Shown here in pieces: positions 3,894-44,302 of a stretch of 64,000 nucleotides of DNA. The notes below the pieces were generated by a model that was not told the origin of the DNA, did not search any database, and was given only the letters and a program-made list of their open reading frames with translations. Numbering within the stretch: position 1 is the first letter of the stretch; every line of letters starts with the position of its first letter. A program made the translations under genes and the position numbers. Origin of the DNA: Rhodosorus marinus CCMP1338 (lineage: Eukaryota > Plantae > Rhodophyta); NCBI GenBank assembly GCA_029953675.1, contig JAMWBK010000007.1, positions 1,178,001-1,242,000 of the forward strand, given 5' to 3'.

Positions 3894-3964
3894 GAAGTGC
3901 ACAGAGCGAGAGGCCCCGGAAGGAGAAGTGCACAGAGCGAGAGGCCCCGGAAGGAGAAGTGCAC
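3894..3964. repeat. 31-bp tandem repeat, 2.3 copies
   Basis: GAAGTGCACAGAGCGAGAGGCCCCGGAAGGA at 3894-3924 and 3925-3955, plus partial GAAGTGCAC at 3956-3964. Confidence 0.95.
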
Positions 3965-6282: not shown

Positions 6283-9200
6283 CTTGGAGAACTGAAAAAT
6301 GGTCAGAGAGAGCTGACCAGAACGCCTTCTACAAGATTCCGACAAAGACGATATCGACTTCAACCGGTTGCCCCAGCACGCGTTCCTATCCAGCACCAGC
6401 TGCCCCGTCGCACGAAAGGCTGTACAGCCAAGCAAATCGATATATATATACGCTCAACAGTTCGATGGCATATTCGTTAAATACCGCAGAGCAGTTCGCG
6501 TCAAGAAAAAACCTTTTTCAAAACCTCCTTTTGGAGAACGCTACCCAACAGCCGCACTTCTCAATACAACCAATTCCATTCCCACCTCTCCTCCCCCGCC
6601 CCCCCCATTTAACGATCCTTCTCGTTGGTAAAAGCGCTGTTAACACACTAACATATACATCCAACCCCTCAGTCCCTCTCACTCTCTCCTCCCCCTGATC
6701 TATAGTCTCCCTCTCCCCCCTGGCACATTCCGGTCACAAAAACACAACTGTTGAAAAGCGTTTCTCTTCATTTTTGTTCGTTTCTAGAAGAATTGAACGT
6801 TTGCACAAACAATTTACTTAGCCCATCATCGGCAAAGCAGAGAGTGCCAACTCTACATTTCCTGAACCCCTATATTTCCCCACAACCTCTGTGAGGTCCG
6901 TACTAGTCATCTGATGCTAGTATGTCCGTTGAACTGTGTGATAGAAAAAAATACCTAGGGGGGGGGAGAGGGGGCGGGAGAAGGTGAAGGGGGGAAGAGG
7001 AAGAGGATCGGAATATGATACCAGAGAGAACTGGAACATGAATTAGGAAAACAAAAAAAAGAAGAAAGCTATTGGGTCAGTTTGTTCTGATTACCTGTCA
7101 AGATTGAACAAAACTGCACGAAGAATGCGCAGACTCTTTTCCGTTTCCCAGCGCCTTTTCGCTTTATTCCTAAAAAACTCTTTGGGTGATGGAAGTTCTT
7201 CTAATGAGTAGTTCCGCGTCCTCTCCCACCCTCCGTGTCTCGGGAATACAAAAAAGAAAGACAAAAAAAATCCTGTATTTGAAACTCAACGGGTAAAAAG
7301 GAGACACTGTTGATTTTTTTGTTCTGTTTTTGACCCCTTTGTGGATTCTTGTAGGCACATATCCACCAAAAATCGTTAAGCAAAAGCCGGGTTTATTTCG
7401 TCAATTCTTTTCTCGAGTTAGTTGTTTTTTTATTCCCAATTCGCTTCCCGCGAGGCCCACTCCCCTCCCCTCCCCTCCCCTCCCCGGGGGGTGGCATTTG
7501 GATTTCGCCTCTTCCCATAGATCCACTTGGGGCACCCCCAGGGTAATTCTGTCCAACCACTCTTTTGATATTTCAGTAGAAAAATGGATGGTGAGGAATA
7601 TGCTAAATATTCCTGAACATTCACTTCAACTCGCGTAAGAAACTCATAAAATTCATCTAAATGATATCCAATGGATGATTTGTATGACACAGCAGTTTGG
7701 CAACTCAAACTCAATATTTAGAATTTCAATATTCAAGTTCAATTCGTGAAAAAGTAGTTTTTCCAGAGTGCAGGAAACCTAATTTTTTTTGGCGGCGCGA
7801 GAGTTTGATAATCTAATCCCTACTCGCTCTAATCGTACGTTTGTGGGAATATTTCTAGGCCAGAACTTCACCGTTACTACACAGAAGCTCAATTCTGAAA
7901 TGGAAATAAGGAATATTCTGCCCAGAATGGTCAAAAATAGAGTTCTTTGTCGTTGACCTTGCATTCTTGGATCGCGCTGCCAAAGCGTTCTCACATATAG
8001 GGAGGGGGGGTTAGGAATTCGCCATTGGCGCGATCAACGATTGTTTTCATCGACATGGTTTGTCTCAGATCTTTGAAAAGCTTGACTAAAACGTCGTTTC
8101 CGGGGTGGACTTGTACTTTTTTTTTTTACGCATGTTAATATTCTCGAAATTTTGGCCTTGTTTTTTCATTTCTGACGCATATTCTTTTGCTTGTTTCATA
8201 TTCCGTCGAGCGCAGGACAAAAAAGAACAAACGTTTTCGGGAATATCCGTGTATATTATAGAGCTCTGCAGTCCTTACTTTAGAGGGGAACATTTGAGTT
8301 TCGACGGGTTATTATTGAGAACCGATTTTGATCAGAGCTAAACTCTCAAAATTGGCATTGCCGCATGCCCAAATCTTAAGATCCAAGCTCTACCAATGAT
8401 AGCACGGGAACTGAATCGACGCAGAATTGATTGGTGGAAAGGATTGAATTCCGTTGAAATTCCGGACGAAGTCGACTGTTACAAGGAGTGGGGCACTGGA
8501 GGTCAATCGTCGTCGACACCGAAGTCATCTGGAGACCGAGGAAAAGTGTACAATTATTGGGAGACATGGGCCATGATAAGGTATCCGTTGAGCTTGGACC
8601 CGTCGCAGACGCACCACAAGCAGAGCGGAGCATTCTAGTGCGGGGAAACCCGCCGAGCCTGGCTATCCAATTTTTGAGGACAAGAAGTATGGACACATAC
8701 CGTCCACCCCACCTTTTCCACGGACCGCTCGACTAGCATGCAATAACTACAGCTACATGGAAGTGACTTTTGATTGGTTAAATTATTAAATATATGATTT
8801 TCTTAAAAATAGGAGAAAACATGCTCAGACACCTCGACATCCTTGTATTCAGAAGTATTTTTTATTGTCATTGTGGGTTGATCCTGAGCTGCTTCTGCAA
8901 CCGCTGTGGACAAGCCACGCCACATCGGGATCGAAGCGCGAAAGTAGAAACCGTTTGAAAATTTGAAACAAACTGGGTAAATGAGGGATGGTCATACATT
9001 TTAGAGGGGGGGGATCGATTCTTTTGAAATGATCAGAAGTTTCACCTTCCCACCCCCACCCCCCCCTGCACTTTCTTCTAAACGGTTGGTAAGCCGGCGA
9101 CCTTGGAAGTTTTATCTGCTATTTTTTTCTCTCGGATATTGCACCTAAGAAGGTCACGTATATTGTTTCGAAAGTTTACGTTTTTTGGTGGCCGTTTCGA

Positions 9201-11098
9201 CACGAGGTCCCCCGCAAAAAGAAGGCATGCATTTAACAATTTACTAGTTATTTTTCCAACCTTCCAAACGCATGGTGCTGATTTCTTCTTTTTTTGAGGT
9301 TGAACCAGTCCGTGATATTAGACCGATGGAGGTGGTTAGCAAATGGAACAGAAAGCAAGGGACTCCCGACAAAAAACAACTGAACTTCCTCAAGAACGTG
9401 GAAACTATATTCTCAAGGAGGATTTTTTCAGTTTGGAATGATTCGTGAAATTGATGTTTTCGTGTTTAATGATTAAGTAACTTTGGATAGTTTGTGAAAA
9501 GTTTTTCGGTACTGAGAGACGTCGGTCTCTCTTTGGCTAATTAGTTGTTCGTTGCTTTAGTATTTCCGGGGATTTCTGTTTTGAAGCGCTAAGAGATAAC
9601 TACGTCTTGGAAGATGATGTGCATGTGTTATAAGGGGGTTGGCTGGTAGAGAAAGAAACGCCATCGTTTCAAATTACATGCCGGTGAATGAGAATGAGTG
9701 TGTATAGGGGAGAGATGGCTCACAATATTGCAACGAGCACATGGTATGCTTTTTGTTTTGCACGTCAACTGGCAAACGGGGAATTTTTAGTTAAGGAGAT
9801 GGTTGCTGGTGGCCCGGGAATTTCAATTTCCTTCAATCCGGGTTTAGAAAGTGCTAGCCCGCAGACAGCTCTCCGCGCCCCATCTCCACCTCAAGTTCCT
9901 TCTATTCGCACTTGAATGGAAGGATTTCTATATGTATCTCGCCCACCCAGTTCATCGTTCTGCTCCCGGACACGATGACACGTGTGAAGTGGGTGAGTGT
10001 TCCGAAGCTTCTATTAGGGAACGAACAGCTTTTAGGTTCTTTTCCACCAGCTCGGGATGGACTTGATGTTTATGGAGATGGGCAGGGGGCTTTTAGTGCC
10101 GGCTTCATCTGTTCCTTATATTTTTCACCAACGTTTTTGTAACACAAACTGCGTAACCCGTTGAAATTTTTTTAGTCTGCGTTACGAACTAACTTATGAA
10201 GCGAGTATCCGATCCCGAACGGATAACAAACTGATCAGGTATGGACTGTAAAGTGCACGGCACCCGGCCCCATCGCAATGGAGAGCGAAACAGCCCAGAC
10301 CAGACGTGCGCTACCCCCGCCCACTCCCATTTTCAAGCAACACGAACTGAGCTCGCAAGTTTCCGTAAGACTTGTAAGATGACATGTACGACCTTGCCAA
10401 AAAGTGTGTTTTTCGTTTATGCAAGGTTGAGCCACTAACGGTACTCGTTGCAACAAAAGGTTCGCGACAAGAAGATCCCTGGGCTTACTTCCGTTCGGCT
10501 TGCTCTCAGTCACTAGTTAGCTTCCACCAGTCATACTCAAGCGGCGAACGGCCTAGTGGCTTCGAAGACTTTTTTGGCGTGCGGGAACTGCCAGGCGCAG
10601 TGCAAAAAATCGCAGGTTGGCAGCAGCCAAGGGATCCGTTTTAATGCATTGCGACTGAATGTGTTGTTCAAACAATGCTTTTCCCAGTGCAGAAACCACT
10701 AAATCGCCATCAATCTAGTTTCCAGTCTCATATGAGTCGAGGACTTTTCGTTCCCAAACCGCCGTGTTTCAATCTCCCCCTTTTTTTCTTTTTTTTCGAT
10801 GCTCTTACCGCATAGACAAGGGCAAATCGTAGCCACGCAACCACGTCAGCGAGCTTGGAATGCCGGTTGTCTCCCCGGTTCACAACTCTACGTAGCCGCA
10901 TACGGGAGCCCAACATTCTGGTGCGGGGTTCACATCGCAGGATGAGTCCAGCGAGGTGAGTCCAGAGTCGAGAGTCGACTTTGCAATGTTGTTTTTTTTA
11001 TTCACTCGACTTTCGCCGAATCTAGCCAGGCACGAAGGACAGGCTGTCTTTGTTCGAAATCGACTGACACGTGCTCCATTAACGCGCGACGCAACGCG

Positions 11099-11369
11099 TG
11101 TCGGTGATCCAAATTGATTTTAAATTCCCTTTTTCTTTTTATCTTTTATCTATCTTGGATGCACCCCCTTGAGCTCTAATCCTGAGACGGAAGGTCGAAA
11201 CTTCCGTATTTATAGGCTTCCGGTTCATATCCTGGGTTTGCTAGACTACTATTATTAGATCTAGACTTTTCTAGTATTAGCCAAATATCAGCCATTTGGC
11301 TCGACTATTATTAGACCTGTTTTGGGCTACACACTCCTGACGGCTGACTTGTTCGGTCAGGACGTAACA
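11099..11369 (-). repeat. LTR copy (left, inverted)
   Basis: Reverse complement of 12893-13168, with TGT...ACA termini on the minus strand. PPT-like AGTGGGGAGGAG immediately upstream on the minus strand (11371-11382). Confidence 0.75.
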
Positions 11370-11868
11370 ACTCCTCCCCACTGAAAGAAAGAACTATCCG
11401 GTGGAAGAAGAAGCTGCCTTGTGGAGGTTTGTATAATACCGCATTTGTTTCTTGGCATTCTGGTTCTGCGGTAGTTGATGGTAGGGCAACCATCTCAAGT
11501 CGTCCGTTGTCTCGCCTTCAAAGTAAACGAAGTATTCGTTCAGGTTCTTTTCGTCTCGACGATGTCCAAAAACTGACTTCAACTCGCGCTGTGGTATGTC
11601 TGGTTGTAATGCGGGAACTACATGCGAGGCTTCAGGTTCCGGTCCATTGAACTTTCGTAATAACGAGACATGAAGAACATCATGTAGTTGAGAATTCCCC
11701 GGGAGCTCCAGCTTATATAGATGCTACGTTACCAATTTGGCGGGGGGCAAGGAGTGTTGATCCTGTTGGCGGCGTAGGAGGTTTGCGGCTGCTTCCGGTA
11801 AAGGGGTAGTCGGGGTATCGTCCGGAATAATGAGATCAGGTAGTAAGGATGGATTTGCCCCATAAAGA

Positions 11869-12891
11869 ACCTGCGAAGCTTTTTGCCAGAGGCAAAAACC
11901 ACTCCGACACTCAGCGGGAAAGTTGAATCCACTGCCTGCTCCAGACGGGAGATTTCAGCCGTATCGATGGATTTCATTGGCGCCATAACCGAGGACGGGT
12001 TCGACGCGATCTTCGTGATCGTCGATCGCTTCACAAAGTATGCCCGTTTCTTACCGACAACGACAACGGCGACTGCGCAACAAACCGCGAAGCTGTTCTT
12101 ACGTCATTGGGTTAGGTTTGCTGGTATACCTATAGACATCATTTCTGACCGAGATCCAAAATTTCCGGGACTGTTCTGGAGGGAATTGTTGAAGATGCTG
12201 CAAGTAAGGCAAAACTTGAGTACAGCATATCATCCACAGACAGACGGACAGACAGAGCGAGTCAATCAGACGCTGGAGACGTACCTGAGGTGTAGTTCGA
12301 CTGCAACGAATTGGGCAGAAGATCCTATCGATTGCAGAGCTGGTGTACAATCGTCAGATCTCGGAAGCGACGCAGTTCTCCCCATTTGAGCTACTTTATG
12401 GGGCAAATCCATCCTTACTACCTGATCTCATTATTCCGGACGATACCCCGACTACCCCTTTACCGGAAGCAGCCGCAAACCTCCTACGCCGCCAACAGGA
12501 TCAACACTCCTTGCCCCCCGCCAAATTGGTAACGTAGCATCTATATAAGCTGGAGCTCCCGGGGAATTCTCAACTACATGATGTTCTTCATGTCTCGTTA
12601 TTACGAAAGTTCAATGGACCGGAACCTGAAGCCTCGCATGTAGTTCCCGCATTACAACCAGACATACCACAGCGCGAGTTGAAGTCAGTTTTTGGACATC
12701 GTCGAGACGAAAAGAACCTGAACGAATACTTCGTTTACTTTGAAGGCGAGTCAACGGACGACTTGAGATGGGTTGCCCTACCATCAACTACCGCAGAACC
12801 AGAATGCCAAGAAACAAATGCGGTATTATACAAACCTCCACAAGGCAGCTTCTTCTTTCACCGGATAGTTCTTTCTTTCGGCGGGGAGGAG
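11869..12891 (+). pseudogene. Frameshifted Ty3/gypsy integrase with C-terminal chromodomain
   Basis: Manual translation across frameshifts: CEAFCQRQK (Zn-finger CxxC half), LNPLPAP, VSMDFIG, DDE core, SPFELLYG, IGNVA/YKLELP..LHDVLHVSLLRKF (end of the GPY/F module, with an upstream deletion), chromodomain-like KSVFGHRRDEKNLNEYFVYFEGESTDDLRWV. Confidence 0.85.
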
Positions 12892-12892
12892 T

Positions 12893-13168
12893 TGTTACGT
12901 CCTGACCGAACAAGTCAGCCGTCATGAGTGTAGCCCAAAACGGGTCTAATAATAGTCGAGCCAAATGGCTGATATTTGGCTAATACTAGAAAAGTCTAGA
13001 TCTAATAATAGTAGTCTAGCAAACCCAGGACATGAACCGGAAGCCTATAAATACGGAAGTTACGACCTTCCGTCTCAGGATTAGAGCTCAAGGAGGGCAT
13101 CCAAGATAGATACAAGATAAAAGAAAAAGGGAATTTAGAATATTTAGAATTATTTTGGATCACCGACA
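12893..13168 (+). repeat. LTR copy (right), ~276 bp
   Basis: Starts TGTTACG two bases after the PPT GGCGGGGAGGAG (12880-12891), contains TATA-like CCTATAAATA (~13045) and ends CCGACA. Confidence 0.75.
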
Positions 13169-13468
13169 CACGTTGCGTCGCGCGTTAATGGAGAACGATC
13201 GCTGCAGGGATTGTCGTCGACATGTCGAGGTTGCTTGAGTGAGAAAATTTGCGAGGTGGATTTTTTTTTGCCGAAGAGAAACTTCTGCAGGATGCCTAAA
13301 GTCGGAAGACAGAGGGTTGTTGGGTATGGGACAGTAAAAGGCGCTATTTCACGTTTGACAATAGCAGTGGTAGTCCGACAGATGGACGTATGCGGCTCTG
13401 CAAAGAGGTTGATTGTGACATCCTGAGTACCTGGTCAGCAGCTGCCTCTCAGGGTAACCGTATCTGTG

Positions 13469-13544
13469 GAACACAGTCGTTCCGCTTTTCCGGAAATATA
13501 GTGACGAACACAGTCGTTCCGCTTTTCCGGAAATATAGTGACGA
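13469..13544. repeat. Perfect 37-bp tandem duplication
   Basis: GAACACAGTCGTTCCGCTTTTCCGGAAATATAGTGAC at 13469-13505 and 13506-13542. Confidence 0.95.
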
Positions 13545-13824
13545 TCTGCGCGTTCTGCCGGGAACTGTTGAGTGCTAATTATTTTAATTATTTGCGGGAG
13601 CGGCTGTGAGACTAGGAGATAACAGGATGATGTCTGTATCTTCAGCAGGCAGACATAGCGAGGACCGCCGCATCTTTTAGATCGGTGCAGTGCTTCTTCG
13701 TCTCTTTGGTTTGGTGTTCCGGATTATTGCGAACCAAATGCCCATTCCGCTACATGAAAATTATACTGTTATCAGGTTGGTGGGGGACTATAATATTTCG
13801 CATGGGTCCGCACTGACGCCACGG

Positions 13825-15338
13825 TCAAAAGAAGCTTGGTTTTTTGATTACTCCGGAGAAAAGCACCATCCCGGAACGGTGCAGGATGGTAAACGCGAAC
13901 GGTCGATCCACGAGGAACTCAATTGGCGGCCTACCAAGGGACATTCTCATCATGGTCACAGCAGTAGCCGCCGCGGCTTTGGTGCCGTACTCGTCGACCT
14001 GTCAGTGTTGAAGACGACCAGGTGAGCGATCATTACGTACGCGGCTGAGATTTGATTCAATCTGAACAGTTGCTGCAACCAGCCTTACCTCAATAACAGC
14101 TTTGTGTGCAACATCTCCGATAATAGCATCATCACGAGTGCAGATCCCTTTCAGCATACCCAATTCCGAAAAGATGGACTCAATTCCCATGCTGCGTAGT
14201 ATATCCTTCACACTGGCTGCGTACTCAACCTTAAACCGGGGCATCTGCACCTTCACTTTTTGCATCTCCCACGGTGCACTCGATATCGCCCCATGTGGAT
14301 TAGGCACGTCTCCTGGTGAAGGCAGGGTCACGACAGCGTGGAAATCACCAGACTTTCCTGCTGGATAGTAATGACATGGGGCGCTTTTAGCTCGAGGAGT
14401 TCGAACGTATCCTCTCGTGTCGACTTGCTTTCAACCTACCGTACGGAAGCTTAACGCTCGCTTCTCCACTCGGCAACTTGCGGTACATGAAACTAGTCTG
14501 AAACGTCTTCATCATCTTACAGGTCTCTGTTGAGCCATCTGCCTGGGTGAACAGAGCATCTTCGGTCGCCTTTTCGGAGAACTGGGAACTCCACTGGCCT
14601 TTGAAGTACACTGCGTTCACCAGCATCGCGATTGCATCCTTGTGGAGCTTGGCCAGCAGATTCTTGATTAGACCATTTGTCTGGGCCTCCACCTGATCGG
14701 GCCGAACAGTAATTTCATGAAACCAAAGCATCAGGTTCCTTGTCCTTGGATGAGTCACTGCTCGGTGTGGTATTGCTCACCCATTCGTTGATAGGATCTG
14801 GACTCGTGGGAAGCGCCGCTGTATGTACTGACAGCTTGTCCATTTGCCATTTGTAGGCCGGCTTGAGGCTCTCCGACATCCACAGCGAGTTGACGAACTT
14901 TGTCTGGACTGCCTCAGTATCTATTTGCAGCTCTTCCGTGAGATTTTCCAAGACGTTCCCAGCGCACGGCAAGAACTTGTCCAACTCTTTTTCTCCAGCT
15001 GAACCTGCGGTTGTGCCCAACCTTACCATCGACATGGCAGCCGCGATGCTAAGAGGCGAAAAGAATACATTTTCCTTGGGATTTGACGCAATCATCGCGT
15101 CGAAAACGCTGCTACCAAAAGCATTCACGCTCTTCACCAGCTCATCATCCTTCATACCAACCCCGCAGAATCCACCCACAACGGCAGCTTCCTTAGCCAA
15201 CTCCAGGTCCCTTTGAAAAACCTCAGGCCTCTCTATCCTTCCGCGAAACCCAAAAAACCAAACAATCCAAAGCCCCAAAGCGCCCAAGAAAACTCGAACC
15301 GTCAAAGATTGGGATGCAACCCCCTTCCCCTTTCCCAT
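13825..15338 (-). CDS. Serpin (probably inhibitory), 4 exons
   Basis: Serpin motifs NVFFSPLSIAAAMSM, INEWV, LVNAVYFKGQW, MPRFKVEY, VAHKAVIE. Manually found last exon VDEYGTKAAAATAVTMMRMSLGRPPIEFLVDRPFAF..VLFSG, stop at 13825. Predicted GT-AG introns 14693-14780, 14361-14439, 13999-14088. The start is uncertain (15338 or the downstream MKDDEL). Confidence 0.9.
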
Positions 15339-20090: not shown

Positions 20091-21938
20091 TCAGACTGTG
20101 TTGGCTATGGCTGGACCCTGCGGGGGGTTGTTTCTGGAAAGGGACTTCAAGTACGCGCTTGTCGGCCTCTCCCCAGGCATAGCGGTGCCGTTCGCAGTAG
20201 GCTCTTTGCCAAGCTTCATGCTGACACGGGCAAGCTTTACGTCGTCCAAAGCGACTCCACTCTGGATATCACTACTTGCTGCCTCAACTGGCTGCACAGC
20301 AGCCTTTGCCTCCTCATCCTTCCAAAAGACGTCAACTGGTGGAGGAGGGGTGGTCTCCCTAGGTATATCTTCAATTCGAGATGTGATTGACGTCGTGAAC
20401 CCAACGGCAAAGTTAAAGCGTTCGAGTGCTAGCATATCGATGCCTGCAAGATCCACCAGCCTTTTTATGTTTTTCCCGCCTGATCGGCGAGGTGACTTCC
20501 AGTATGCCCTCCATTCCTTGGCGGTCGGGGTCTTCGTAGCAATGAGTTTCTCCTTTTTCGCCGAACGCGCTGGTGCAGATTTTACAACCACGATCGTTTT
20601 CGGCTTTGGAGGGGCCTGGGGGGTCTCCTCAATTGGTTTTGAAGTAACCTGCTTAGCGCGAAAGACTTGCGCTTTCGCCTTCGCCTCACTGGCGGCTAAA
20701 GGTTTTGCGTCTTGGACAGCGCTCACCGGCACGCCGTTCGAAGCAGCGCTCTCTTCTGTAGTTGCGACTGGGCTAGGAGCCTCTAACACTTCAAAGCCTG
20801 GCTCGGTTTCTTTGGCATCTCGGGCTTGCGATTTTACAACTTTGATCACTCGTACTGGAGCTGCTGGTTCCGGTGTAGCAGGTTTGCTCTGCTCTACGGC
20901 TCCTTCAATCGCAGAATCCGCACTGACGTCGCTTACGAAGGACGCGATCTTCTGGATGTTCGCCGTCCTCTGCTCCGGAATGTCTCCGAACACCGCGTGT
21001 CCTTCCCCAGGAAGCTTAACCAACTCTTTCCGTTGGAACACAGTTGCTTTTTTCATGATCAACTCCGAGTTTGATATGCTCGAGCGGTGGTCGAGCTCCT
21101 TGTGCAGAATTAGCAAATTATCGAGCGTAACTCGTGGCAAACTCTGCTCGAGATCATTGGATAGATCCATAATAAGTGCACCACATGCGCATCGGAGAAT
21201 CGTATTGTACCCACTAAGTGGATCCTCCTTGGAGAACGCAGCCGCTTCGGCGTCGCCGAACATTTTGTCCCAGTCTGTCTTGGAGATCACATCCGGTAGC
21301 TCCCATTCTGGAGTTAGGTTTCGCATGAGGTTGAGCCCACCCTTCACTAATGGCATTGACATCTCTTCAATTCGTACGAGCGGAGAACACAAAATGACTC
21401 CCTTCAGCAAGTCAGCCAAGTCAGGTTTGAGGACTGCCTGCAACGATAACAGTCCACCAAACGATTCGCCGAGCAAGAACAGGGGTGTTCCCGGAGCTAC
21501 CGAGTCCTTGAGTCGCAGCAGAGCAGCTTCAATTTCATCCATGAAGTCTTCCGGTTCCTTGGCATACATGCGAAATCCGTCAATATCGTCGGACTTTCCG
21601 TGAGAAGGGAGATCCAATCCGTGCACAACAGCCTGCGAATCTTTGCAGAGTCCTTCAGCTAGCTCAGCATACCACCCCGAGTGGAACAAAAAACCATGCA
21701 GCACGAGAACGGCGGCAGCGGGCTTTCCTCCAGGAACTCTTCTCCTTTCAAAAACCTCACGAGAAGGATCTCTTGCTGACGTGATTGGCTCCCCATCAAA
21801 ACCAACACTCCAATTCAGCTGGGACATGCTCGTGAGGCCTTTCCGCCACGCGCTAGCCCTCCGCCCTTGTAAGGTTGAAGCTGCATAGTTCAGCTCCTTC
21901 ACTCCAACGCCGCCAACAAATCCAAGCTCACCAGCCAT
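20091..21938 (-). CDS. Monoacylglycerol-lipase/lysophospholipase-like alpha/beta hydrolase with long Ala/Pro/Lys-rich C-terminal extension; probably plastid-targeted
   Basis: HGFLFHSGWY oxyanion region, GLDLPSHGKS, nucleophile elbow GESFGG, acid (ELDHR) and His (GEGHAVF). N-terminus MAGELGFVGG. Confidence 0.85.
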   Translation of the reverse strand: MAGELGFVGGVGVKELNYAASTLQGRRASAWRKGLTSMSQLNWSVGFDGEPITSARDPSREVFERRRVPGGKPAAAVLVLHGFLFHSGWYAELAEGLCKDSQAVVHGLDLPSHGKSDDIDGFRMYAKEPEDFMDEIEAALLRLKDSVAPGTPLFLLGESFGGLLSLQAVLKPDLADLLKGVILCSPLVRIEEMSMPLVKGGLNLMRNLTPEWELPDVISKTDWDKMFGDAEAAAFSKEDPLSGYNTILRCACGALIMDLSNDLEQSLPRVTLDNLLILHKELDHRSSISNSELIMKKATVFQRKELVKLPGEGHAVFGDIPEQRTANIQKIASFVSDVSADSAIEGAVEQSKPATPEPAAPVRVIKVVKSQARDAKETEPGFEVLEAPSPVATTEESAASNGVPVSAVQDAKPLAASEAKAKAQVFRAKQVTSKPIEETPQAPPKPKTIVVVKSAPARSAKKEKLIATKTPTAKEWRAYWKSPRRSGGKNIKRLVDLAGIDMLALERFNFAVGFTTSITSRIEDIPRETTPPPPVDVFWKDEEAKAAVQPVEAASSDIQSGVALDDVKLARVSMKLGKEPTANGTAMPGERPTSAYLKSLSRNNPPQGPAIANTV

Positions 21939-23846: not shown

Positions 23847-24893
23847 TTATTTGCTGGCTTCGGAAGTTGTCAGCTCCTTCACAAATGAGACTACTTCTCG
23901 AATGTTCTCGACACGTCTCTCTGGAGCGTCCTGGAAGACTTGATGGCCTCTTCCGGGAATCCTGACCAGTTTCTTCTTTCCGCTGACTTGAACCTCCTTC
24001 ATGATGAGCTCGGAGTTGGATATGCTTGAGCGTGTATCCTCTTCGTTGTGTAGGATGAGCAAGTTGCGCAGTTTCATATTTCCAAGCGTCGCCTCTACTC
24101 TATCAATAGCTTCGAACATAGACACTGCAAAGGCCAGACGCATCGGTTCTCCGTATCCGACGAGGGAGTCGTTTTGAGAAAGCTCTACCGCTACGGGATC
24201 TCCGAATGCTTCAGCCCAAGTCTTGCCAGACAAATCCTGCCCGGGAGGCACAGCAGTGGCAAACACGTTCCTCACAAGCCTCATGATGGTGAGCACGATC
24301 TTCGACGGAACGATTTCCTTGTTTGGTAGCAGCACAGGTCCACAAAGAACAACACCCTGAAACAGGTCCGCGAACCTTGGGTTTAGATTCAGGAGGAGAA
24401 CCAACAGCCCCCCAAAGGACTCCCCCAGTATGAAAATAGGTGCATCATCTGGCAGCGCCGACCGAAGACGGTCGAGAGCAGCCTCAATCTCTTCCAAAAA
24501 ATCCTCTGGACTTTTCCCATATGCTCGCAGCCCATCAATGTTATCGGACAGCCCGTGCGAAGGAAGGTCAATCGCGTGAACTTCGGTAAGGGCTTCCTGG
24601 CTCAGGTCACGAGCTAGCTCCCAGAACCAGGCAGAATGCCATAAGTAGCCGTGGACAATCAAGAGGCCAGATGCCGGGGTCCCTTCCGGCACCCTCCTCC
24701 TGTAGAAAATCTTCATGGACGGGTCCCTGGATGACGCAACATACTCTCCATTAAATCCCTCCCCAGAGTTTAGCGCCCCCATTCTTACTATGTTGCTTCG
24801 CCTGAGTCGGAAACAGCAACTCTCTTCATAGACCTTCAACCTGGGCTTTACTAGTCCCACACTGCAGACGAAACTCAAGCGCTTCACCTCCAT
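23847..24893 (-). CDS. Monoacylglycerol-lipase-like alpha/beta hydrolase, tandem paralogue; probably plastid-targeted
   Basis: HGYLWHS, DLPSHGLS, GESFGG, EEDTRSSISNS, GRGHQVF. High similarity to the hydrolase domain of 20091-21938. N-terminus MEVKRLSFVCSVG. Confidence 0.85.
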   Translation of the reverse strand: MEVKRLSFVCSVGLVKPRLKVYEESCCFRLRRSNIVRMGALNSGEGFNGEYVASSRDPSMKIFYRRRVPEGTPASGLLIVHGYLWHSAWFWELARDLSQEALTEVHAIDLPSHGLSDNIDGLRAYGKSPEDFLEEIEAALDRLRSALPDDAPIFILGESFGGLLVLLLNLNPRFADLFQGVVLCGPVLLPNKEIVPSKIVLTIMRLVRNVFATAVPPGQDLSGKTWAEAFGDPVAVELSQNDSLVGYGEPMRLAFAVSMFEAIDRVEATLGNMKLRNLLILHNEEDTRSSISNSELIMKEVQVSGKKKLVRIPGRGHQVFQDAPERRVENIREVVSFVKELTTSEASK

Positions 24894-26143: not shown

Positions 26144-28803
26144 CTAATCCGAGGACAAGGATGCGATACCAAGTGGATTTGTCTCTCTATTCGAGGTGGT
26201 TCTAACGTCCGATACCCGTGTTTCACTTGATGACACAGGGTAGGCTGCCGAACTCGCCCCAAACCGGCACATTTTGTAACGATCGTCTTCTGGTCCCCTT
26301 CGAGCTAGTGCGTCCGTCGGAATGCCCCCACCGGTCCGGATGGTGAAGGGGCCATTTGACCCAGTACCGCTGTTGGTTATCTTGGCCTTCCAAATTACCC
26401 CGCGGTAGCCCATCCGAGTTCCGTGCCTCCTCTCGACGAAAGCAGTGAGGGCCTTCGCGTAACCGCTGTTCGAGTGGCGTCTCAGGCCTACGGACATGAA
26501 CGAGGAGTGCATCCATGTCATCTCGAACATCGTCGGATCAATAAATAGATCCCCGTCGGCGGTGACTAACGCGACTTGACCCACGTGATGGAACAGGAAT
26601 GCTGGTGGCATCATAGTGACTGGATCGTGGGCGTTGACCATTCTCCAGGTGCAAGGAACAACCGCGTCGTACTCCTTGACAAATTGGTGATTGCCTGCAC
26701 GCGGACTCCCGTAGGTGTACACGAAGACTCCCTCACCGGGATTCATGGTCTTCGCCGTGTCATAGCTGGACAGAGTGGCCAGAGCGCCACCTAAAGAGTG
26801 TCCAGTGAAGAAGATCGGGCGGGGTTCTAGGCTGTACAACCGCTCTAGCTCCTCCAGAATCCGCCTCCGAACTGTCTTGTACACGCGCATGAAACCAGCA
26901 TGCACTAGAGGTCTGGTAGGACTGCTCCAGCAGCGGGTTCCGTCCATTTCCGCGGCTGGTTGATCGTCCCACATGTGTTCTACGGGTACACGCCCTGTGC
27001 GCAGATCCGTTCCAACGTTCCGCGAAGACGAAGTGCCCCTAAAAGCCACAACAATACGGTCCTCCGCGGCAAGAACCAAGGCGTGCGTGTCCGTGGGCTG
27101 ATCCGAGATGTACGAGACCACCTTATTGTTGTTGTCCCCAAAGTCCTGTTCACGACGGAGATAACAACACATACACAGCCGTGAGTAGCCTGTCGTCTGT
27201 TCCCACGCCGTGCTTCCTAGCGATTGTGATTCACAGCCGTCAACCCACCCTCGGAGATCGAGCTTCCTTGTGATCCTTTCCGTACGAGTATGGAAGCCAT
27301 GCAAGGTTGAAGAGCATAATACAAGTTTCCATAACAAAGCTGGTCTTTTTAAACTTTGGATCGTGATGCCGTTCGAACACTCTGTACCTAAACAGGCTCT
27401 CGGTTGGCTGCAAAGATTCCAGGAAAGGACAGCCGCTTAGCTACGAATTTTCCACTTTCGGATGACTTGGACGTGATGAAACATACGTTGTGACTTTTCT
27501 TGTACCGACACCTGATCAGGTCCGTCAACGTTGGGGCCGACGCGGGTAGCATGAAGAACAGCTGCTGTAGAGCATACGCGGGGATGATCGTTAGGTAGCT
27601 CAGCCTTCCGGATGGAGGCCGAAACTGGTATACACCCTGATACTTGGCTACAAGTATCATCGTGTCGTTGCTCGAAAGCATTATGTTCAATGTCCCGAAA
27701 ACTGTCGTCAGGACAAAAGTCAGGGCCAAATAATAGCGGAACTGCCTGGAGACGAACATGAAACCGACCACCAGGACAGTAAGGGTTAGCTCTCAACCGT
27801 TGATCAGACCCTCCAAAAGCTCGCAACAATGGTCCCTCGATAGAGTTGGAAAGACTTACCTAAAGCCGATCTGGAGTGATCTGTAATCGAGGTAGTCCAG
27901 TGAACGGATGTATCTTGCAGTTACCGTCATTTCACAGGTAATGTACAGGACGACCATAAGCTCTGTGCAGAAATTTGCGACGAGCATGAAGAGGAGCCCC
28001 GGCGAGAAGCCGTCTTTGCTGAAGATGATTTCCATACCGGTAGCTAAGGATGACAGTGGCAGCCAATTCAAGTTGACGTTGAGGAGGAATGACACGGCAA
28101 TTCTTGTTACCATGAACATCCCTAGAATAAACATTTTCGGCCAGTACGTCCAGGGAAACCACTGTCCGCGTGGTGTTCTGAACGAAATAGCAGTCGACCA
28201 GATTTGGAAGAAGATCCCCGTGATTCCCAGACAAGAAGACAGCAACGTCGAAATACGGAGCACCGCCTTCCAAGATTGGTCATTAAGTACCAGTACTGGT
28301 AGGAACACAGTGTTGAAGAACGGAATGTAGATGACCGAGCATGATATCCCGAGGATAAATACATACGCCATTTCCCTCGTCCTCAGCGCCTTTGGGGTAG
28401 CCAAAACGACCACAGAATAGTACACGGTCATGAATGTAAGAGCGACCGCTACCATAATCTCCACGACGAACTCAAAAACTCTGTACCAGAAAGCCGGCTC
28501 AACAATCCAGTAAGTCTCTCCCCCAATCTGTTCTGGGCGTACCCAGATCGTATTTGCTAGAACAAGATAAACGATCGTAGAAATAACCATATAAACTGCC
28601 GAAACAACGTACAACAGCGTCACCTTCGTGAGCTCCGAAGCATGAAGAGTCTCAATCTTCAGTCTTGGCTCCGACACAATAGTCGGCATCGAAAGCCCAT
28701 ACGTTCCAAAACTAGTATCATCTGGAACAGGTATACCTGTGGAGTCATTCAGCTCCTCCAGAGTCAACTCTGGATCCGCTGCGGGCTTCTCTGAGTAATC
28801 CAT
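26144..28803 (-). CDS. Multi-TM (Wntless/TMEM181-like) domain plus class-3 lipase fusion, copy A, 4 exons, ~787 aa
   Basis: Exons 27860-28803, 27487-27745, 27249-27407 and 26144-27145 join in frame across GT-AG introns. About 8 hydrophobic helices. Lipase motifs VAFRGTSS, GFMRVY, FTGHSLGGALA, YTYGSPRAGN, DPVT, RHSN. Confidence 0.85.
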
Positions 28804-29919: not shown

Positions 29920-32531
29920 CTATGGGACGTCCTTATTCGGGTCCGTGTCCTTGTCCTCGAACGCTACTGTTGAATGTGAAGGTCTGATATCTACTCGCCG
30001 CTCCAATTCTGAGCTCTGAGGCCACCCAAGCTTGGCTGACAACGTCTCCGCTCCTCCGCTGGAAACTAAGAACGAGGAGCTCATCGACGTGGATGGCGCC
30101 CGCCGTGAAGATGTCGGGATTATCGCGCTGAATAGGGTGCTTCTTTGTCCAAACTTAAAGGTATCCAATTCGTTCTTCCACACCGCGCATCGCGTTCGTA
30201 CTTTGAGCTCGTCCCGTCTCTCAACGAAGGCTGCGAGTGACTGCGCATATCCACTGTTCGAGTGAGTCGCAAGCCTGAAATTCGGCAGGATCGAGCGCGA
30301 TGCATGCATCCAACCCAGCTCGAACATGGTGGGGTCGATAAAGAGCTCCCCTTGCGCCGTAATCAGCGCTGCTTGTCCGACGTGCCGAAAATAAAGCGGC
30401 GGAGGCATCTTCGTCACCGGATCTTTGGCGTTGATGATCCTCCAAGTTCGCGGAACTCGCTCATTGTACAGGTTCGTAAATTGCTGGTTTCCAACTCTCG
30501 GACTGCCAAAAGTGTAGCAAAACAGTCCCTCTTCCGGCTCCATAGTTCTCGATAGATCATAGCTGCAGAGCGTACCCAGGGCGCCTCCTAAGGAATGTCC
30601 TGTGCAGAAGATCGGCCGCGGCTGTTTTTGGTAGAGTCTCTTCACTTCGGCGACGACAGCTGGTTGAACCGACAGGTAAGCATCCAAAAAGCCTCTGTGG
30701 ACCATCGGCCCTTTGTGCCCACACAAGTTGCTCCCCGTATTCTCGTCGGTGGTACCACCAGCTTCAGCGTGCAACTCCTCCAGGGGACCCATGGACGTCC
30801 TCAGGTCGGTCCCGACATTCCGAGTTGACGAAGTGCCCCTGAAGGCAACCACGATCCTATCGAAAGCAGCATAGACAACGGCATGGGTATCCGTCAAGTT
30901 GTCCGCTGCGTAGAGAGAAACGTTGTACTTTGAGCATCCAAAGTCCTGGACATCGCAGAATTTTGGATGGAGAACGAGATCAGCAAAGGGAAACAATCCA
31001 TTGCGCCAGATTGGAATTGCCATGCGTCGTATTACCATGGGCCTTCGCGTCTCCTTCTTGTGCTTCTTACCATAAGAATAGGCTAGCCATCCAAGATTGA
31101 ACAATGTGACACAGGTCTCCAACACAAAGCTATTCCGTTTGAACTGCGGCTGTCCCCGCTTCTCCAACGATCGATATCTGTACTGACCTTCTGTCGTCTG
31201 TTGCACGTGAAGAAAGCCATTAGTGGTGGAAAGTTGTGCAAGAGAGACGCGTCACAGACGTACGTTTTGAATCTGCTCATCGCGGCATCGAAGCAGGTCA
31301 GAAATGCTTCTGGCAGAGGCCGGTAGCATGTAGAACATTTGCTGGAGTGTGAATGCTGGTAAAACCGCAACGTACGCGAGGCGGCCGGAAGCTGGACGAA
31401 AGTTGTGGCGACCAGTGTACCTCGAGATCCCGTAGAGAACGTCAGTACTTATCAACGTCGCCGTTAATATGCCGAAAAGCGTCAGGAGCAACATCGTTAC
31501 GCCCAAGTAGGAACTGAACTGCCTACATACCCGAATAAACACGGATCACAACCATCAGCAAAACCATATTTCACCAATCGCATGCTCCACAACGTGCCAC
31601 GGCAAAGAGCTCACCTGAAACCGATTTGGAGAGATCTGTACTCGAGGTAGTTCAACCTTAGCAGATGTCGATAAGTTAAGACAAGTTCAAATATTAGGCA
31701 ACAAAGGATCCCGAACTCAAGCACCGCGTTTGCCCCGAGCAAGAATATGACATTTTCGCTGTAGGTTACGGTCTGGAGCCTCAATTTCATGAGCGCTACA
31801 ACCAGTGAACAAGCTGGAATCCAGTCAAAGTTGACCCGAATCACCGTAGATGCCAGAATTCTCGTCATAAAAAATACCGCAACAACGGCCATCTTTGGGT
31901 AGTAGGACAACGGCATCGACTGATGCCTCGGGAGACGGAAGGAGATAATTGTTGACCAGATATAGAAGATCATACCCGTCGCACCGAGACATCCCATGAG
32001 GATTGTCGATACTTCGATGTGGTTTGAGAGCATATCAAAGTTAAAATTGTCAACAGACTGGAAGGTGTTCTCCGTAAGCGGCACCATGATGCAGGTTACG
32101 GAAACTCCGAGCACGAGCACGAAAAGCATTTCTCGAGTTCGATTCTTCCTTGACTGCGAAAACACCGTAAGTGCGTAGAAGACTGTCGAGATCCCCGTGA
32201 AAAGGCACAAAATCGACTCAATGCTGAAGTCCACGATACGAAACCACTGCGGTGGATAATGGTACCAATAGGTACTACCGCCATCCAGCACTATAGACTG
32301 CAACCACAAAGTTTTCGACATTGTGAAGTAGAAAGTGTTATAAACAATCATGAACACAATAGATACCAGGAACAAAGCAGAGACACGACCGAGCTCACAG
32401 GCGTGTAGCGTTTCGATTTTCAGCATAGGCACGGATGCCGAGTGAACGACAGATTGTGCGTTCGACTCAATCTCATCACCGGTTGAGTCGAGGAGTTCCG
32501 AGTCTATAGTCAGCTGAAGCGTAGAGTTCAT
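29920..32531 (-). CDS. Multi-TM (Wntless/TMEM181-like) domain plus class-3 lipase fusion, copy B, 4 exons
   Basis: Exons 31615-32531, 31264-31522, 31036-31197, 29920-30945, with the same intron positions and phases as copy A. CTGHSLGGALG, FGSPRVGN, DPVT, THSN. Confidence 0.85.
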
Positions 32532-43201: not shown

Positions 43202-44302
43202 ATGCAGAGCGTTAAGTTGGGATCCCAAGGCTTGCAAGTAAGCAAGATGGGATATGGGTGTATGGGTCTCACAACTGCGTATGGACCCAAACAACCCGAC
43301 GCAGAAGCAATTAAACTTCTGAAGAAGTCTACGGAGCTTGGCATGTCTTTCTGGGATACTGCCAATGTCTATTGCTACCCCGACATTTCAAAACTTTTGA
43401 GATTTCAGTCACCAGTTACATGCCAGGAGGAGATTCTTGGTCGAGCGATAACGGATATCGGAAGGGAGAACGTAACCATTGCGACGAAGACCGGGTTGGT
43501 ACTTGGCGTCTTCCCAAAGATTTCCTTGACCGCGAATGGTGACCCAAGTTTCATCCGGAAACAGTGCGAAATGTCGCTCAAGAGACTCAAGGTAGACTAT
43601 CTAGATCTCTTCTACATTCACCGAATAGATCCGAACATCCCCATCGAAATCACCATGGCGACAATGCGGGATCTCGTCCATGAGGGAAAGGTCAAATACG
43701 TTGGACTCTCTGAATGCTCAGCGGCGACGCTCAGAAGGGCCCACAAAGTGCACCCTATTTCCTGTATTCAGATGGAATGGTCCCTTTGGTGCCGAGAAAT
43801 TGAAAAAGAAATCGTGCCAACCTGCGCTGAACTGGGTGTGGGCATTGTTGCGTACTCGCCTCTTGGAAGGGGGTTCTTCGGAGGTGAGCTGAGAACTACT
43901 TCAGACCTGAAGAGTGCGGATTTTCGGAGCAATACTGGACGCTTTCAAGAGGAGAACCTAGAGAAAAATCTCGCCCTTCTCGAAAAAGTCGAAGCGCTAG
44001 CAAGGACCAAAGGTGTTTCAAGCGCGCAGCTGGCGCTATCCTGGGTCCTCCACAAAGCGGATCTACTCAATGGTGCAGGGGTGGTGCCAATACCAGGCAC
44101 GACAAAGGAAAAGAACCTAATCAGTAACGCCGGCGCCGTGAACATCGTCCTCTCCGCGGAGGAAATAAAAACTCTGGAACAAGCAGTTGACCAGAACCCA
44201 GCGCATGGAGCTCGCGGCCAGAGTGGGCAGGTGCAGTGGGAAAATGACAAGAATCCGCCGCTGTCGCCGTCGGACGCGGCAAAGTATAGGATTAAAGTAT
44301 AG
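43202..44302 (+). CDS. Aldo-keto reductase (AKR13/auxin-induced-like subfamily)
   Basis: LGSQGLQVSKMGYGCMGL, WDTANVY, IATK, SLKRLKVDYLDLFYIHRID, GKVKYVGLSE, VAYSPLGRG, VVPIPGTT. Intronless. Confidence 0.93.
   Translation: MQSVKLGSQGLQVSKMGYGCMGLTTAYGPKQPDAEAIKLLKKSTELGMSFWDTANVYCYPDISKLLRFQSPVTCQEEILGRAITDIGRENVTIATKTGLVLGVFPKISLTANGDPSFIRKQCEMSLKRLKVDYLDLFYIHRIDPNIPIEITMATMRDLVHEGKVKYVGLSECSAATLRRAHKVHPISCIQMEWSLWCREIEKEIVPTCAELGVGIVAYSPLGRGFFGGELRTTSDLKSADFRSNTGRFQEENLEKNLALLEKVEALARTKGVSSAQLALSWVLHKADLLNGAGVVPIPGTTKEKNLISNAGAVNIVLSAEEIKTLEQAVDQNPAHGARGQSGQVQWENDKNPPLSPSDAAKYRIKV

Follow-up and report, generated by a model that had tools for sequence, protein, structure and literature searches.

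An apparently immobile inverted duplication of a decayed Ty3/gypsy chromovirus 3' end in the red alga Rhodosorus marinus

Introduction

Chromoviruses are Ty3/gypsy elements (Metaviridae) of algae, plants, and fungi, in which two LTRs in direct orientation flank gag-pol and a polypurine tract (PPT) lies directly upstream of a 3' LTR starting with TG. They include the closest kin of the locus described here, both within Rhodosorus (P0007 and L002, from JGI/MMETSP0315 data) and among full-length elements (P0052 and P0029). Inverted terminal repeats enclose retroelement-derived sequence in DIRS-like elements, which use a tyrosine recombinase and contain an internal complementary region. Mu killer-type duplications of maize consist of a partial mobile element inverted around a spacer, and both transcription from an outside promoter and siRNAs have been shown for such loci. 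Inverted partial copies around a spacer are also found in rearranged endogenous pararetroviruses with micro-scale inverted conformations (PMC9868043), and in Drosophila populations inverted tandems and oppositely nested insertions of complete LTR retrotransposons have been documented as outcomes of double or nested insertion (PMC5932611).

Here, we analyze a 64-kb stretch of DNA (the window) from contig JAMWBK010000007.1 of the red alga Rhodosorus marinus CCMP1338, in which the end of a chromovirus occurs twice, in opposite orientations, around a spacer. The locus shares with chromoviruses a DDE integrase core (57-71% identical to the integrases of full Ty3/gypsy polyproteins), a probable tail of a Tf2-type SH3 domain, a chromodomain fold, and a PPT followed by an LTR of the form TGT.ACGTCCTGAC, but it keeps only the 3' ~1.3 kb of such an element, lacks gag-PR-RT, 5' LTR, PBS, and target-site duplication (TSD), carries its LTR copies inverted instead of direct, and has a chromodomain that falls below the Pfam threshold. 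With Mu killer-type loci and the rearranged pararetroviruses it has in common the inverted partial copy around a spacer and, in principle, the capacity for a long hairpin transcript with homology to its family; it differs from Mu killer-type loci in being derived from a red-algal LTR retrotransposon with its own promoters facing outward, and in being known from DNA sequence alone. Unlike the Drosophila cases, the two partners are the same 3' fragment, with an identical inner tract and perhaps some shared sequence beyond the LTR. DIRS-like elements differ in their enzyme, the locus having the remnant of a DDE (rve) integrase, and the inverted ends are here a secondary duplication and not a family trait. 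Rather than an element, the locus is a fragment of a Ty3/gypsy chromovirus that has been rearranged; it has the look of a single event with an inert product, of a kind already known (inverted TE duplications), and not of a new type of mobile element.

Genomic setting and architecture

The genome of R. marinus is compact and gene-dense (31 Mb), and its assembly is based on ONT reads (NextDenovo) polished three times with short reads using Pilon. The inverted structure sits within 7.5 kb without called genes, so that the gene calls place none on the structure itself; Pfam and Rfam searches of 6283-13824 returned no match to any other TE or gene remnant, and a word-indexed search found no ORF of the locus in the protein collection. 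Only one called gene is transcribed toward the structure:

13825..15338 (-): serpin gene, 417 aa, with introns; its 3' end lies ~630 bp from the structure

A repeat finder and blastn independently identified 11070-11867 and 12394-13197 as inverted copies, which align over 808 columns at 96.7% identity (13 mismatches, 9 gap openings, E = 0 in blastn) and form the only long repeat of the window. Both arms comprise an integrase C-terminal tail, a divergent chromodomain, a PPT, and an LTR, laid out as follows:

11070..11867 (-): left arm, reverse-complement match to 12394-13197, repeating the final ~0.8 kb of the element in inverted orientation
11868..12393 (+): spacer, 526 bp, unique, with the integrase catalytic core (rve), collinear with the right arm
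12394..13197 (+): right arm, running directly on from the spacer

The spacer continues into the right arm without loss of collinearity, which makes the boundary between these two a natural one and leaves 11867/11868 as the novel junction; it falls between the integrase zinc-binding domain and the core. An earlier interpretation made from the letters alone (the sequence-only reading) had claimed an inverted double 3' end of a Ty3/gypsy element around a 526-bp spacer, outward-facing inverted LTRs, a novel inner junction at 11867/11868, an integrase core within the spacer, an absence of Gag, PR, and RT, and a distinction from DIRS, and on each of these points the alignments above and the domain and tblastn searches below agree with it.

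Coding remnant

The spacer matches Pfam rve (PF00665; E 7e-8, 33.1 bits against a cutoff of 32.6), which was the only catalytic domain found; neither tblastn nor Pfam detected a tyrosine recombinase, and a DIRS-type element was rejected for that reason. In tblastn searches of the 64-kb window, full-length relatives matched the integrase and its C-terminus only, and no gag, PR, or RT was found. Both strands carry a broken gene:

11868..12868 (+): right remnant, broken integrase-chromodomain gene, 5'-truncated
11394..11867 (-): left remnant, broken gene with the integrase C-terminal region, chromodomain, and natural stop
about 11406-11597 (-): left divergent chromodomain, placed by alignment to relatives and an AlphaFold model

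Missing from the right remnant are gag, PR, RT, RNase H, the 5' LTR, and most of the zinc-binding domain, and the rest is broken by frameshifts at three points, by a single in-frame stop, and by an internal deletion of ~55 codons, which in comparison with P0007 amounts to most of the SH3-like domain. The left remnant is free of frameshifts; its in-frame stop and its internal deletion, one of each, recur in the right arm. With its 5' truncation, frameshifts, stop, and domain deletion, the coding remnant is dead. The Tf2-type SH3 domain (GPY-F) is matched at profile positions 39-63 of 64 only (E 2e-4; 22 bits, below the cutoff of 30), and the left arm retains just its tail. Pfam Chromo gave no match to the chromodomain of the locus, even at E <= 10. 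When aligned to P0052 and P0028, whose chromodomains are Pfam-verified, the left-arm open frame stays in register, and an AlphaFold model of this frame, built on an alignment that included chromodomain-bearing relatives, predicts three strands and a helix with pLDDT of 80-91 for residues 41-100. The best 50 PDB matches to the model were all chromodomains (TM 0.6-0.86 on the target, rmsd 1.3-2 Å), and the predicted fold confirms the identity of the integrase C-terminus as a chromodomain.

LTRs and element ends

Downstream of the coding remnant, each arm continues through a PPT and an LTR to a short terminal block:

12880..12891 (+): right PPT, GGCGGGGAGGAG, conserved in L002
11371..11382 (-): left PPT, its state unchanged from the outgroup L002
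12893..13170, perhaps to 13195 (+): right LTR, with a TATA-like motif at 13046-13053 pointing rightward
11097..11369, perhaps out to 11072 (-): left LTR copy, with a TATA-like motif at 11207-11214 pointing leftward
13171..13197 (+): right terminal block, 27 nt, CpG-dense
11070..11096 (-): left terminal block, 27 nt, CpG-dense

The start of the LTR, TGT[T/G]ACGTCCTGAC at 12893 (here TGTTACG), was set by its conservation in the related element L002 together with the adjacent PPT, and the PPT stands directly upstream of this TG-starting 3' LTR, as it does in Ty3/gypsy chromoviruses. The LTR is short (about 280-300 bp), and both LTR promoters face outward, the right one antisense to the serpin gene. 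Two ends of the LTR come into consideration: a candidate CA at 13168/13170 would leave about 27 shared nt beyond the LTR, and alternative TG..CA termini at 11072/13195 would leave just 2. The ~25 bp beyond the LTR that the sequence-only reading had named would apply under the first of these ends only. The terminal block contains 6 CpG in 27 nt, a level reached by 0.14% of the 27-mers of the window, and its composition differs from that of the LTR body (3.6 CpG per 100 nt) and from the flanks. Terminal inverted repeats at the candidate LTR ends scored no better than shuffles. To judge from its sequence, the block may be either the U5 end of the LTR or duplicated flank.

Divergence between the arms

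The innermost 357 bp (12394-12750 against 11511-11867) are identical between the arms, and every difference lies in the outer ~450 columns, a distribution with a probability of 1.5e-6 under a uniform model (about 5e-4 if only the 13 substitutions are counted). With L002 as outgroup, the right arm shows about 7 derived changes and the left arm 2, and so the arms diverged independently after their common ancestor. The identical tract ends inside coding sequence, at no structural landmark, as expected of a conversion tract, and the pattern suggests that the tract arose through later gene conversion from arm to arm. A polishing artefact was rejected as its cause, as read pairs find good anchorage in the unique spacer right beside it. 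Conversion may have spread the stop and the deletion that the arms share, since both fall within this tract; they need not predate the duplication.

Relatives and signs of mobility

An exhaustive search of 5.8 billion clusters and a word-indexed search yielded no protein closer than 70-71% identity, and no second copy was present in the window or in the fetched R. marinus DNA (about 73 kb genomic); the single-copy status of the locus refers to this DNA and to the called proteins. A metagenome scan, which missed even the contig of L002, returned only chromoviruses of <=43% identity. L002 and L084-L086 (MMETSP0315/JGI contigs) are related families that end before any LTR end, the contig of P0052 has no LTRs, and a scan for the PPT/LTR-start pattern across viral contigs gave no matches. 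A sister strain of Rhodosorus transcribes related elements, all of them collinear, indicating that inversion does not characterise the family.

No 4-6 bp direct repeat that could be a TSD was found at four candidate boundary pairs, and the similarity between left and right flanks, which might hint at an empty site, was not above chance. ARAGORN detected no tRNA-like remnant of a PBS and a permissive Rfam scan gave one chance-level lncRNA match; the PBS region would lie at the 5' end of the element, which is missing. Where a complete element has direct LTRs around gag-pol, the LTR copies here are inverted, and no 5' LTR is present in the 64 kb. At the novel junction, the first bases of the spacer and the bases just inside the right arm are complementary at 3 of 5 positions with the terminal pair mismatched, so that the junction looks like a homology-free join. 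Two proposals of the sequence-only reading find no support in these results: a self-primed fold-back origin lacks the complementarity it needs at the inner junction (3/5), and a non-autonomous mobile unit has against it the lack of a TSD, a PBS, a further copy, or any called protein above 71% identity in the sequences searched. The check it had suggested, a search for other copies with the same junction and TSDs, returned none in the window or the fetched R. marinus DNA. Judged by these features, the structure looks immobile and inert.

Origin of the inverted duplication

On balance, we favor a local event on the chromosome, an inverted duplication within a decayed chromovirus remnant that is now immobile. 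We propose that, at the level of DNA, double-strand-break repair or replication template switching gave rise to a second, inverted copy of the last ~0.8 kb of the element (integrase C-terminus, chromodomain, PPT, LTR, and possibly <=27 nt of flank), and that this copy was attached, with no homology to guide it, at a break within the integrase gene. Each arm would then have gathered its own mutations, and the inner 357 bp would have been re-homogenised later, most simply via arm-to-arm gene conversion. The location of the LTR end bears on this proposal. An LTR body ending with CA at 13168/13170, followed by a shared and distinct 27 nt, fits the duplication of an integrated copy with some of its flank; an LTR ending at 11072/13195 would mean that the repeat stops <=2 nt from the terminus, and would favor a cDNA origin or two insertions over a random breakpoint.

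Minus-strand synthesis soon after the first strand transfer has made the LTR through the integrase C-terminus, and the left arm could be such an incomplete or folded-back cDNA, end-joined into a break in a resident copy, or else the whole inverted dimer could have arisen as cDNA before its insertion. Such an origin at the reverse-transcription stage would account for an arm that spans exactly the 3'-terminal part of the element from at or near the LTR end (the left arm starts with TG at 11072, if the LTR terminus is there), the homology-free inner junction suits capture by end-joining, and relatives are transcribed in the sister strain. We nevertheless consider it unlikely: the missing TSD means that integrase did not insert the unit, the ends carry no recognisable PBS-derived sequence, terminal complementarity for self-priming is lacking, and with an LTR end at 13168/13170 the shared 27 nt would be foreign to the cDNA of a normal element. 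Twin priming as in L1 elements was rejected, being a process of non-LTR elements that does not duplicate sequence. Two independent head-to-head insertions of the same family, followed by a deletion from the integrase C-terminus of one to the core of the other, are slightly more doubtful. A deletion would also leave a homology-free inner junction, the 3-4% divergence of the outer arms could in part stem from the source copies, and inverted tandems and opposite nesting have their precedent in the Drosophila insertions mentioned above. However, this scenario requires two arrivals, only a few kb apart, of a family that seems to have very few copies, and the identical stop and domain deletion in both, or else conversion in any case; the 357 identical bp would still demand a separate event, and the 27 nt of shared non-LTR sequence would clash with it if the LTR stops at 13170. 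That the second arm was made by a chimeric or fold-back long read or by a polishing error is scarcely credible, even though the assembly is ONT-based with short-read polishing, which struggles with inverted repeats. Fold-back read chimeras are spacerless palindromes with identical arms, usually at contig ends, whereas this structure has an asymmetric 526-bp spacer, is bordered by unique DNA on either side in the middle of a 2.2-Mb contig, and shows 3-4% outer divergence with outgroup-polarised derived changes on both arms; moreover, its identical tract lies beside the unique spacer, where paired reads anchor best, which reverses the pattern expected from a polishing artefact.

Potential as a source of hairpin RNA

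Like Mu killer-type loci, the structure is an inverted partial TE around a spacer that can fold as RNA in silico: on either strand its predicted fold reaches about -1700 kcal/mol with about 780 arm-to-arm pairs, compared to -590 to -680 kcal/mol for control segments. The sequence-only reading had suggested a source of hairpin RNA and siRNAs, and the predicted stem of ~780 pairs agrees with that part of the suggestion; a hairpin transcript driven by the LTRs is not supported, since the LTRs and their TATA-like motifs point away from the center and only read-through from outside could cross the arms. A long hairpin RNA would form only if outside transcription read in, for example minus-strand read-through from the serpin gene.

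We give little credence to the idea that the locus acts like Mu killer and silences its own family of chromoviruses through hairpin RNA or siRNAs. Silencing triggered by TE inverted duplications is an established precedent (Slotkin 2005, in the account given by PMC9868043; PMC11624286), at least one red alga, Chondrus crispus, encodes DCL and AGO (PMC12026948), serpin transcription is directed at a structure with a predicted stem of this length on either strand, and the expression of a related family in the sister strain would give the locus something to silence. Weighing against these points, the promoters of both LTRs are directed outward, neither a gene nor a transcript is on record across the structure, the called proteins of this genome include no intact copy of the family, so that perhaps no target is left, and the outer ends of the arms are decaying, which gives no sign that the stem is under selection. 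The complete chain, by which serpin read-through would yield a ~0.8-kb stem that is diced into small RNAs suppressing the chromovirus lineage in Rhodosorus, is by analogy conceivable and slightly less probable again. If true, it would be the first described transposon-derived hairpin silencer of a red alga and direct evidence for RNAi-based transposon control in the Stylonematophyceae.

As it stands, the locus is a small structural curiosity, a rearranged chromovirus relic retained in a compact red-algal genome, and would gain greater weight only with small RNAs that map to its arms, given how little is known of the control of transposons in red algae. It shows that inverted duplications of TEs, from which hairpin-RNA loci and fragile sites can develop, arise in this genome as they do in plants and flies, and its identical inner tract between diverged outer arms is a neat, small-scale case of apparent gene conversion from arm to arm. 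In alignments with relatives, two of the three canonical aromatic-cage positions of the locus chromodomain are non-aromatic, and this divergent domain with its replaced cage positions adds a minor data point to the diversity of chromoviruses in Rhodophyta.

Structure and coding content of the rearranged chromovirus end

The two arms of the structure (11070-11867 and 12394-13197) were 96.7% identical over 808 aligned columns, with 13 mismatches and 9 gap openings. A repeat search and blastn agreed on this inverted repeat, which was the only long repeat in the 64-kb window (base 1 of which is base 1,178,001 of the 2.21-Mb record JAMWBK010000007.1, assembly GCA_029953675.1). By exact sequence, an intact aldo-keto reductase ORF of the window matched this record alone. 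The 526-bp spacer between them (11868-12393) encodes an rve integrase core scoring above the Pfam cutoff, and its coding sequence is collinear into the right arm, making 11867/11868 the only novel inner junction, exactly where the sequence-only reading had placed it. That reading had described a chromovirus 3' end present twice, in inverted orientation, around an integrase-core spacer, and the repeat search, blastn, Pfam, the predicted fold and the related transcript contig L002 all bear it out. Likewise, tblastn with full-length relatives as queries detected no gag, protease, reverse transcriptase or RNase H in the 64 kb, the first three of which had been noted as missing. The original observation is thus real and, apart from the ~25 bp said to lie beyond the LTR, which would depend on where the LTR ends (see below), accurately described.

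Features of the structure and its surroundings
11070-11096 and 13171-13197, both arms: outermost 27-nt block, 6 CpG per 27 nt
11207-11214, minus strand: TATA-like motif of the left LTR, facing away from the centre
11868-12868, plus strand: right-hand integrase-chromodomain remnant, 5'-truncated
12880-12891, plus strand: polypurine tract, right copy, conserved in L002
12893, plus strand: right LTR start TGTTACGTCCTGAC, following the polypurine tract, conserved in L002
13046-13053, plus strand: TATA-like motif of the right LTR, facing away from the centre
13825-15338, minus strand: serpin gene, 3' end ~630 bp from the structure

Three frameshifts and an in-frame stop interrupt the right-hand remnant, and an internal deletion of ~55 codons took most of the SH3-like domain, leaving just the tail of the Tf2-type SH3 domain downstream of the core; the left-arm remnant (11394-11867) has the stop and deletion in common with it and no frameshift. 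The chromodomain stretch received no Pfam call. In the left arm, where its frame is open, it aligned in register with the Pfam-verified chromodomains of the database relatives P0052 and P0028, and its best three matches among PDB sequences were all chromodomains, but weak (E 0.5-1.3). An AlphaFold model, whose input alignment included relatives, showed three strands and a helix (pLDDT 80-91), and the best 50 PDB matches to that model in Foldseek were all chromodomains (rmsd 1.3-2 A). In alignments with relatives the conserved Trp is retained, but non-aromatic residues occupy two of the three canonical aromatic-cage positions, and we therefore regard the stretch as a divergent chromodomain.

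Divergence between the arms and their boundaries

Differences between the arms are unevenly distributed: no mismatch or indel occurs in the 357 columns beside the spacer, all of them being confined to the outer ~450 (P = 1.5e-6 under a uniform model; ~5e-4 with the 13 substitutions only). Identity gives way to divergence inside the sequence coding for the chromodomain and not at the polypurine tract or LTR boundary, as would be expected of a gene-conversion tract limited by the non-homologous spacer. With L002 as outgroup, nine differences could be polarised. The right arm carries the derived state at about seven of them and the left arm at two, so the arms have evolved separately since their common ancestor. 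The shared stop and deletion are located within the identical tract and may have spread between the arms by conversion; their sharing is therefore no proof that decay preceded duplication.

At the inner junction, the first bases of the spacer are complementary to those just inside the right arm at three of five positions, with the terminal pair mismatched, which leaves self-primed fold-back synthesis by either reverse transcriptase or DNA polymerase, and with it the fold-back origin suggested earlier, unsupported; the join looks homology-free. Around the structure, we found no 4-6 bp direct repeat indicative of a target-site duplication at four candidate boundary pairs, no significant terminal inverted repeat at the LTR ends, no similarity of left flank to right flank, and no tRNA or PBS-like remnant. 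In composition the terminal 27-nt block resembles neither the flanks nor the LTR body, whose end is AT-rich, and its CpG density is matched by only 0.14% of window 27-mers. Given a CA terminus and this compositional break, we lean slightly towards an LTR outer end at the CA at 13168/13170, with the CpG-dense block beyond it; alternatively, the LTR ends at TG..CA at 11072/13195. The former would imply that an already integrated copy was duplicated together with some flank, and the position of this end is the main uncertainty on origin.

Relatives and copy number

HMMER, run exhaustively over 1.84 billion representatives, returned 41,595 integrase relatives, the closest (P0007) at 70%, and a word-indexed search of 5.8 billion clusters added only P0151, also at 70%, with no protein from this or any near-identical locus. 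Both proteins and their kin come from JGI sample 3300016967, where they lie on short contigs. From its orthologue (contig L089) of the window's aldo-keto reductase (43202-44302; 89% protein and 88.9% nucleotide identity), we identified this sample as the MMETSP0315 'Rhodosorus marinus' transcriptome. The 11% difference in this housekeeping gene, nucleotide and protein alike, was noted separately; the MMETSP0315 strain and CCMP1338 are probably different species. Since the relatives' contigs belong to a transcriptome, related chromoviruses are transcribed in the sister strain; contigs L002, L084, L085 and L086 represent at least three distinct chromovirus families there, and their presence as transcripts marks this lineage of elements as expressed. 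At 70-79% identity to the window element, L002 has diverged further than the host aldo-keto reductase and hence represents a related family rather than an orthologue. No related contig from the sample contained inverted segments, all being collinear, and the structure was single copy among called proteins and ~73 kb of fetched R. marinus DNA. The highest-scoring database proteins (P0001-P0006) have two or three integrase cores each, presumably where gene calling in other genomes has run together neighbouring or nested retrotransposon copies.

Origin and hairpin potential

We somewhat favour a one-off chromosomal inverted duplication, in which a decayed chromovirus insertion would have had its 3' end duplicated, with later partial homogenisation of the arms through arm-to-arm conversion, leaving a structure now immobile and probably inert. 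Capture of a cDNA-stage product at a break appears unlikely, and two insertions in opposite orientation followed by a deletion slightly more so. For the nuclear genome of the unicellular red alga Rhodosorus marinus CCMP1338 (31 Mb, 15% repeats; PMC10250338), ONT reads were assembled with NextDenovo, followed by three rounds of Pilon polishing, and an artefact of a fold-back read or of polishing is the most improbable account, disfavoured by the separate evolution of both arms relative to L002, the asymmetric spacer and unique flanks within a 2.2-Mb contig.

Whatever its origin, a working hairpin silencer seems quite improbable. The proposal of a hairpin RNA source gains from a predicted stem of ~780 bp for 11070-13197 on either strand (~-1700 kcal/mol versus -590 to -680 in three control segments), but both LTRs point outward, so the element is unable to transcribe its own hairpin. 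The serpin gene is the only called gene directed toward the structure, the left-hand neighbours all being transcribed away from it; speculatively, the right LTR, if active, would yield serpin-antisense RNA. The seeding of silencing by transposable-element inverted duplications is well established, examples being Mu killer, rearranged endogenous pararetroviruses and proposed LTR hairpins (PMC9868043, PMC11624286); inverted tandems of LTR elements are known in flies (PMC5932611), and among red algae at least Chondrus encodes DCL and AGO (PMC12026948). The locus adds one more case to a type of structure already described.

Neighbourhood and other window features

No genes were called over the 7.5 kb from 6283 to 13824, though the genome is gene-dense (~1 gene per 3.7 kb), and outside the 2.1-kb element this interval had no Pfam or Rfam match and nothing else recognisable. 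Below threshold, Rfam gave a hit to the lncRNA family Mico1 (13304-13498, plus strand; 24.9 bits, gathering score 60, E 0.13), which is most likely chance. Between the element and the serpin 3' end there is a perfect 37-bp tandem duplication (13469-13544, 2.1 copies), and at 3894-3964 a short perfect direct repeat (40-nt match at 31 nt offset). Local tandem duplication is also seen on the minus strand in adjacent alpha/beta-hydrolase (Hydrolase_4) genes (20091-21938 and 23847-24782) and adjacent class-3 lipase genes (26144-28803 and 29920-31938; 787 aa each).
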